This document shows, piece after piece, positions 51,736-51,970 of a stretch of 64,000 bases of DNA. A program made the position numbers and the translations under genes. The number at the start of each line of letters is the position of its first letter. Within the stretch, counting starts at the first letter, position 1. Under the pieces are notes generated by a model. The model ran no database searches, was not told the DNA's origin, and saw only the letters and a list, made by a program, of their open reading frames with translations. Source of the DNA: Hamiltosporidium tvaerminnensis FI-OER-3-3. Taxonomy: Eukaryota; Fungi; Microsporidia. The stretch is taken from NCBI GenBank assembly GCA_022605425.2, contig JAKIMF020000007.1, forward strand, positions 434,001 through 498,000, read 5' to 3'.

Positions 51736-51970
51736 TTCATTCATCCTTAGCATTACAACCCTGTGCAAGCCTTGGTCTCTCTTAGTAATACCTTACAACG
51801 GTCTTTTTCTAGTGGGTTTGTTTACATAATGGGTTTCGTAACAGGTAGTTTTAAAAGGTGCGTTGTTAGCCCTATGCCAACCCCAACATGGAGGATCAGT
51901 CCCTTTTAGTCGCCTCTTACGACAAGCAGGGAATACTTTAAGCCAATTTCGCACCCGGCATGGTGGGGAA
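51736..51970 (-). mobile_element. Family B non-autonomous RTE-derived retroposon, copy 2
   Basis: Reverse strand TCCCTGCTTGTCGTAAGAGGCGACTAAAAGGGA..GGGGTTGGCATAGGGCTAACAAC..CCAAGGCTTGCACAGGGTTGTAATGC..(TGAA)n. TSD ATTTTGAAATTCA at 51723-51735 and 51971-51983. Confidence 0.92.

Follow-up and report, generated by a model that had tools for sequence, protein, structure and literature searches.

What is the RNA block that stands at the 5′ end of a short retroposon family in this genome, and could it be what gives the element its exact 5′ end? Promoterless non-LTR retrotransposons use HDV-like or twister ribozymes for their excision from host transcripts. The original prediction, made on the window (the whole stretch of DNA analysed here, 64,000 nt long), described two copies of a retroposon derived from an RTE LINE, family B or SINE-B, and proposed that a conserved block near their 5′ end could be an uncharacterised self-cleaving or 5′-processing RNA. 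Judging from the sequences assembled below, the finding is real and goes beyond a routine repeat: the anatomy given for the element is right, and the functional idea is plausible.

Family B, an abundant retroposon with sharp 5′ ends

The two minus-strand copies of about 240 bp are both real. Copy 2, which is full length and ~90% identical to the family consensus, occupies 51732..51970 on the minus strand. Its first letters are TTCCCCACCATGCC / TTCCCC, at 51970, and its last letters are GATGAATGAATGAA. It is flanked by the repeat AATTTCAAAAT, with the 5′ TSD at 51971..51983 on the minus strand and the 3′ TSD at 51723-51735; 11 nt of this repeat are certain, and 13 nt are reached once the overlap with the tail is included. 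Copy 1 lies at 47477..47719, also on the minus strand, between TSDs at 47720-47731 and 47464-47475, which form the exact 12-nt repeat AAATTACTTCTA. The exact TSDs and (TGAA)n tails claimed for the pair were therefore found, the TSDs measuring 12 nt in copy 1 and 11 or 13 nt in copy 2. Aligned to each other, the two copies show 82% column identity. Copy 1 appears to be older than the other family B copies, to which it is 75-78% identical, and its head is nearer to the form found in LINE-B1 (see below) than to that of SINE-B.

A search of the assembly (21.6 Mb, 17 contigs) yielded 367 family B candidates, and the 40 that were scored were full length, with 82-86% identity. When the genome was searched with the 27-nt core described below, 218 matches were obtained at ≤3 mismatches, versus 0 for the reversed control. 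The copy number of family B in this genome is at least 218-367. In an alignment of 30 copies with their flanks, the 5′ boundary is sharp and common to all, and the tail is (GAAT/TGAA)n. Exact TSDs of 9-14 nt, variable in sequence, were detected by a TSD-finding script in most family B copies, and where the TSD is clear (≥9 nt), about 14 of 17 copies have their first base at T(T)CCCC, give or take 1 nt. Another copy is located on C15 just beyond the window end (L046:428-651), with ~5 nt missing at its 5′ end. Three pairs of copies (L009/L010, L028/L029 and L091/L092) have identical flanks, for which reason they are attributed to segmental duplication and not to separate insertions; one pair is inverted on contig 8.

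Conservation along the element was measured on 42 distinct copies, which are on average 89% identical to the consensus (the SINE-B consensus is a 240-nt majority consensus, built for analysis only). The block, at consensus positions 43-69, reaches 92.5%, versus 88.8% elsewhere, and ranks 11th among the 199 windows of 27 nt, i.e. in the top ~5%. Its description as the best-conserved part of the element holds as far as this rank goes, but the margin is small: inside this genome, the block is only modestly better conserved than the rest.

Relationship of family B to RTE LINEs

With an AP-endonuclease fragment from one twister-headed LINE (see below) as protein query, ~40 RTE remnants were listed, all of them containing stops, at 30-48% identity. 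For the remnants that reach furthest towards the N-terminus, the upstream DNA was fetched, and in 3 of them it contained the family B head, not a twister. When the UTR plus ORF start from one of these three served as DNA query, 14 such LINE 5′ ends were found. The group that we call LINE-B1 consists of 7 LINE 5′ ends with unrelated upstream flanks (L083, L078, L079, L084, L070, L073 and L064), each beginning at the family B head. Their order is family B head, family B UTR, then the start of the AP-endonuclease ORF, which reads for example LLATWNVRSLHRPGALKCL..IDIVALQEMR (LLATWNVRSL..IDIVALQEMR). The first ~150 nt of family B match the 5′ UTR of LINE-B1.

At the other end, the 3′ module of copy 2 (51732..51808, minus strand, the 5′ bound being approximate) comprises the last ~17 RTE codons, a short 3′ UTR and (TGAA)n. 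In the family B consensus the 3′ part reads, in frame, ..DRWAVLLREAKARTGL* and then enters the (TGAA)n tail; the frame ...EKDRWAVLLREAKARTGL closes at the TAG of GCTGTAG. A relative of this module is present in the window beside copy 1, on the opposite strand: an RTE LINE ORF C-terminal remnant with a short 3′ end (47917..48000, plus strand), which reads ..DRDRWKFIVNEAKAFNTL* and has a TAAG-like tail.

Because LINE-B1 shares its head and UTR, and because its 3′ part is an in-frame RTE C-terminus, family B is a non-autonomous retroposon produced by internal deletion within an RTE LINE lineage, LINE-B. The bipartite origin that had been proposed, 5′ UTR plus 3′ end, is thereby borne out. The parts kept by the deletion, namely the 5′ UTR, the last ORF codons and the (TGAA)n tail, would be what the RTE reverse transcriptase needs for copying family B. 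The LINE-B lineage is now extinct in this genome; every RTE copy examined is decayed, and no LINE-B 3′ end with a (TGAA)n tail was recovered in the genome.

Another set of LINE 5′ ends, 'B2', has a ruined head, and their upstream sequence is common to them. The idea that they represent read-through after breakage of the head was rejected, as they are passengers inside a larger dispersed repeat of at least 1.3 kb, and for that reason they are uninformative on the function of the head. The decayed LINE-B 5′ fragment is found in this repeat at 5 loci on 4 contigs, at ~93-95% identity (the dispersed-repeat loci are L080-L082, L085-L088 and L100-L104, e.g. C1:1847600-1848940).

Other retroelements are present. 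The strongest reverse transcriptase matches in the genome belong to LINE families other than the RTEs studied here, and so does a remnant in the window (4288-4962, plus strand, Pfam RVT_1, a 266-aa open frame). Dozens of RT-bearing elements have intact ~1255-aa ORFs and identical RVT_1 scores (e.g. C12:292565-293284; L057-L059), which suggests that their family is very young and probably still active; it seems to be unrelated to family B. An uninterrupted ORF of 556 aa for a TLC-type ATP/ADP nucleotide transporter was noticed at C12:1980195-1981667 (plus strand) and, together with a genome GC of 25-30%, is consistent with a microsporidian-type genome.

The derivation from a LINE bears on the question of transcription. 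As ordinary SINEs do, family B might use a Pol III promoter derived from tRNA or 5S RNA, and its sequence AGCAGAATTGG resembles an A box, along with a loose likeness to the 5S internal control region. ARAGORN, however, called 0 tRNA genes in family B, and Rfam returned no tRNA, 5S or 7SL match, in agreement with the predicted lack of a tRNA head. Moreover, in LINE-B1 the same head precedes a ~3-kb AT-rich ORF that Pol III could not transcribe, which refutes this reading, and the A-box-like letters are not conserved in the three metagenome contigs presented below (L097-L099). We regard a Pol III head as hardly credible. Since there is no Pol III head, and since an AT-rich LINE of 3 kb begins with the same head, the element would have to be excised from read-through transcripts or else have a promoter inside it.

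Predicted structure of the 5′-terminal domain

Folding predictions place the conserved block at the apex of what appears to be a 5′-terminal RNA domain of ~100 nt, hereafter the X domain, or X. The domain opens with a 5′-terminal hairpin, H0 (51952..51970, minus strand, UUCCC/GGGAG), seen in MFE folds. With 5′ ends placed by the TSDs, the base of H0 is the start of the element RNA. It is followed by the X hairpin (51890..51939, minus strand), supported by MFE folds and RNAalifold and made of H1, H2, a 4x4 loop, H3 and an apical loop. In copy 2, H1 is GGAG/CUCC, H2 is UCUCU/AGGGA and H3 is GUCG/CGAC; a small internal loop separates H1 from H2, the 4x4 internal loop is GCUU/UAAA and the apical loop is UAAGAGG. 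The invariant 27-nt core, identical to the block of the original prediction, lies at 51902..51928 on the minus strand (C15:485902-485928) and is perfect in copy 2. In copy 1 (47653..47679, minus strand, C15:481653-481679) it has one mismatch, and one H3 pair is broken.

The same arrangement, H0 followed by an AGAAU linker and a three-helix hairpin, was obtained when SINE-B, LINE-B1 and one metagenome version were folded by MFE, and RNAalifold, run on 19 sequences, recovered H2 and H3. The fold that had been drawn from copy 2, with an outer stem, an internal loop and a GTCG/CGAC hairpin, thus came out of RNAalifold as well as of independent MFE folds. The stability of the head relative to shuffles is unremarkable (z = 0.2 and -0.8 for this genome's own versions). 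What is conserved in H0 is no more than the pairing of a run of C with a run of G, and such a pairing just 5′ of AGAAU recurs in all contexts. A long-range stem between nt 3-12 and nt 81-90, to which the local 5′ hairpin is the alternative, is near-perfect in SINE-B; it was set aside because it is poor in LINE-B1 and in copy 1.

A twister-headed sister lineage

The block had been predicted to sit where ribozymes sit in RTE elements, and in a sister lineage of this genome that position is filled by a twister. Searched with the Rfam twister-P1 model, the genome gave 422 first-look candidates and 11 full-length matches (L031-L041, e.g. C10:118503-118575 and C15:1071815-1071886), the best having an E-value of 1.7e-7, below the Rfam gathering score. 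The matches contain the complete twister core, AA-CUCC-GCC-[P3]-GCCGG-UCCCAAGC-CCGG-AUAAA-GGAG-GAGGG. Seven of the 11 stand at the start of SINE-A, an element of ~195 nt whose tail is of the (TAG)n type, and 4 head decayed RTE LINEs, LINE-A, in which the AP-endonuclease ORF starts ~100 nt after the ribozyme. The TSDs abut the predicted cut-site AA of the twister in the 2 readable SINE-A copies (L033 and L041), the first bases of L041 being TT, not AA. At the twister-headed LINE loci L042-L045, a tail of neither SINE-A nor SINE-B was found. In a limited literature search we found no paper on twister in microsporidia, or on twister-headed RTE LINEs and SINEs there; this genome records both kinds of element in a microsporidian-type genome.

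Downstream of the head, family B and the twister lineage have a UTR segment in common, located in copy 2 at 51831..51884 on the minus strand (bounds approximate). It consists of a GGGTTG..GCTAAC..AACCC hairpin, then GTTACGAAA. The alignment score of this segment between the two lineages is 46, compared to 15.5 ± 2.8 for dinucleotide shuffles, and 0 of 2000 shuffles reach 46. For the heads the local alignment score is 17, compared to 15.0 ± 2.8, and 489 of 2000 shuffles reach 17. Based on the fact that the likeness of the UTRs is far beyond chance while that of the heads is not, X and the twister appear to be alternative head modules placed upstream of a common UTR. In a MAFFT alignment the block came to lie alongside P4/L4 of the local twister; a family B head made by mutation of that twister was rejected as homology, given the same 489 of 2000 shuffles.

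The X core in other organisms

A scan of JGI metagenome contigs detected the X block in 3 contigs (L097, L098 and L099). Their 27-nt core is 100% identical to that of SINE-B, with unrelated flanks and a GC content of 42-52%. In L097 (GC 52%), a (TAA)n microsatellite is followed by ~50 nt starting with CCCCC, by X, and by an intact 1171-aa ORF. The reverse transcriptase in the middle of this ORF was the sole Pfam domain found, and the C-terminus contains a CCHC motif and a PD..E..K-like motif. By the known R2/R4-type architecture, L097 is presumably an R2/R4-like LINE with a restriction-like endonuclease, Dong-like in its TAA repeat. L098 and L099 (GC 42%) contain a SINE-like unit, in which X is followed by a stretch that resembles a tRNA and includes A- and B-box-like words; ARAGORN called no tRNA in this stretch. 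The block had been expected to occur in the 5′ UTRs of animal RTE elements: it does recur, unchanged, in these three contigs, but the one carrier that can be classified is R2/R4-like, not RTE. Viral contigs and prokaryotic genomes gave 0 matches to the X core, and a full-text literature search for the letters of the motif returned chance 12-mers only.

Two observations concern the surroundings of X in these contigs. In L099 (Ga0081606_1071020), the reverse strand carries, at ~1660-1810, a twister remnant followed by a GTTACC.AAAG-type UTR, some 70 nt before an X-headed unit. In L098, which comes from the same sample, an element with a (GAAT)n tail lies upstream. On account of these neighbours, both head types seem to coexist in a second organism.

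Around the invariant core the helices vary yet pair. H1 is GGAG/CUCC in SINE-B, CCGC/GCGG in L098 and L099, and CAGAGU/ACUCUG in L097; H2 is UCUCU/AGGGA in SINE-B, UUCC/GGAA in LINE-B1 and CCUCCU/AGGAGG in L098 and L099. The LINE copy L070 has GUUG/CAAC as H3 instead of GUCG/CGAC. The covariation that the original prediction called for was thus found in part: the outer helices differ and still pair, but the sample is of four lineages, with one doubly changed pair only according to RNAalifold. Because invariant loops go together with variable, compensated helices across unrelated elements, these sequences indicate, for four lineages, that selection acts on X as an RNA structure. X would be an exchangeable module, which takes the slot of the twister relative to a sister RTE lineage and heads unrelated retroelements elsewhere.

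These data also permit us to judge whether X is simply a decayed ancestral RTE twister, without any function of its own. X does occupy the position of the twister, and its elements follow the order of a P3-less twister (helix, GC loop, helix, AAG loop, A-rich strand, helix). Its similarity to the local twister is nevertheless at chance level, and hundreds of copies were amplified with sharp 5′ ends. Above all, unrelated elements and organisms share the core without change, by which this reading is largely refuted; a recent horizontal copying into L097-L099 is disfavoured by their unrelated flanks. We consider a decayed twister very improbable.

Proposed function of X

Because it is found in the twister slot of a sister lineage, and because it is unchanged in unrelated retroelements elsewhere, X is probably a functional, so far undescribed 5′-end module. 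Our preferred reading, held tentatively and at somewhat less than an even chance, is that X is a cis-acting RNA that forms the 5′ end of the element and is possibly self-cleaving. It would act in cis on read-through transcripts and so create the exact 5′ end of the element. The likeliest route would be self-cleavage at the base of the 5′ hairpin, in the layout of the HDV-like and hatchet ribozymes, and after cleavage X would remain on the RNA as its 5′ terminus. To our knowledge, these two are the ribozyme classes that lie wholly downstream of their own cut site. A more specific version of the preferred reading, which we take as possible and rather doubtful, is that X represents a new self-cleaving class cutting at its own 5′ edge, the third after HDV-like and hatchet, exchangeable with twister and spread among RTE, R2/R4-like elements and SINEs of distant eukaryotes. 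No known catalytic core was recognised in X. Its invariant nucleotides lie 40-50 nt away from the 5′ end, and no contact linking them to the presumed cut was identified.

The sharp 5′ ends would be explained equally well by an internal Pol II initiator or by a host nuclease. X may accordingly be a functional but non-catalytic structure of the 5′ UTR, on an element whose 5′ end is set by internal promoter initiation; candidate roles are the binding of a conserved host factor or of the ribosome, stabilisation of the 5′ end, and a part in translation or RNP assembly. Invariant loops in variable helices are typical of protein-binding RNAs too, a catalytic core is not recognisable, and the element begins in a pyrimidine run, like some initiators. 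A role in translation has a precedent for this slot, as LINE ribozyme heads are reported to support translation of the downstream ORF (PMC8501958). The SINE, however, has no ORF to translate and still keeps X, and any promoter or host-factor site would need to function in a microsporidian-type host as well as in the organisms behind L097-L099, which are richer in GC. The sister lineage solves the same problem by means of a ribozyme in the same slot. Since X serves in microsporidian-type and in much GC-richer hosts, an intrinsic activity of the RNA fits better than a promoter. Overall, we see the non-catalytic role as a genuine, though unlikely, alternative to the formation of the 5′ end by X.

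What appears new here is that X heads LINEs too, that it stands in for a twister upstream of a UTR common to both lineages, and that unrelated retroelements of other organisms carry it unchanged. Two sister RTE lineages with one UTR and different heads, twister versus X, amount to a natural swap experiment, and the swap points to one specific RNA of ~100 nt as the candidate for cleavage. If X cleaves, it is a new class of nucleolytic RNA which leaves no upstream scar, and a useful tool. If X does not cleave, it is a conserved 5′ element of retrotransposon RNAs that would act with some partner.

Comparison of X with known systems

Run on the whole window at gathering thresholds, Rfam 15 returned nothing, and at E-values up to 10 it returned nothing relevant on small stretches of family B, L097 and L098. 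The hairpin, hammerhead and pistol ribozyme cores, compared by eye, did not fit X. R2, RTE and other LINEs are found with HDV-like ribozymes at their head. The nested double pseudoknot of this class could not be built by hand for SINE-B. In L097 a pairing is possible between the 5′-terminal CCCCCG and a CGGGGG further downstream, and there is an 8-bp P2-like pairing; P3/L3 does not fit. Rfam gave no HDV-like match, but its models encode no pseudoknots.

The twister was compared in most detail. Models of this class (RF03160 and the permuted types) have no match on family B at E-values up to 10, versus 1.7e-7 for the sister lineage. The element begins with UU, not AA, and C or U, not the general-base G, follows the P2-like strand. 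The loop UAAGAGG stands against CCNAAGC of twister L4, and the CC and the GGG pseudoknot partner are absent. Twister variants with 0 or 1 A are reported to be inactive (PMC8501958), and so are A1 and G mutants (PMC11662667). The failure to fit X to hammerhead, HDV or twister, already reported with the block, agrees with the empty Rfam search and with the absence of the twister catalytic nucleotides.

A small ribozyme of the twister-sister or 'lantern' type, cutting in the UAAA strand of the internal loop, has more in its favour at first sight. GCUU(G) and (C)UAAA resemble the L1 strands GCAAG and GCUCAU of twister-sister, as well as the LINE-1 and OR4K15 mini-ribozymes. The topology also fits, with two helices around the loop and an AAG terminal loop, and several of the differing positions are reported as tolerated in twister-sister, namely A7U, A8U and C62A (PMC5660989, PMC11620745). 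Against this, X has no counterpart of the bulged conserved G (G59 or G7), the C of the cut site is replaced by A, a change abolishing the activity of the LINE-1 core, and the Rfam twister-sister model has no match. In addition, a cut in the UAAA strand cannot make the end of the element, because the copies retain both sides of it and have their 5′ ends 64 nt upstream of the predicted cut. We hold this reading to be improbable. In terms of likeness, X shares with the twister-sister, LINE-1 and OR4K15 ribozymes (PMC5660989, PMC11620745) part of the loop strands, the AAG terminal loop and the two flanking helices; it differs from them in having no bulged G and no cut-site C, and in that the predicted cut would be internal.

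Coming back to formation of the 5′ end by X, X shares the gross layout of hatchet (PMC6561176), in which the RNA end lies at the base of a 5′ hairpin and a short conserved linker leads to a long hairpin interrupted by two internal loops. X contains no conserved hatchet nucleotide; its own conserved nucleotides are apical, whereas those of hatchet are in a basal loop, and the hatchet Rfam model has no match on family B, L097 or L098.

The twister of the sister lineage (CUCC-GC-P3-CCGG-UCCCAAGC-CCGG-AUAAA-GGAG-GAGGG) has in common with family B the UTR downstream of it, and a twister minus P3 has the same order of elements as X. Compared to this twister, family B lacks the cleavage-site AA, the L4 CCC or GC pseudoknot partners and the general-base G, and it retains ~35 nt upstream of the point equivalent to the cut. 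The twisters of LINE-A and SINE-A are nearly the same as the Perere-3 and T-variant twisters of Schistosoma mansoni (PMC8501958). Like the Perere-3 twister elements (PMC8501958), family B belongs to the RTE clade, bears a structured RNA exactly at its 5′ end and has TSDs directly adjoining that RNA. Finally, family B has the same build, TSDs and high copy number as the retroposons made of the 5′ UTR and 3′ end of a LINE, and its head module is the sole feature that is unusual among them.
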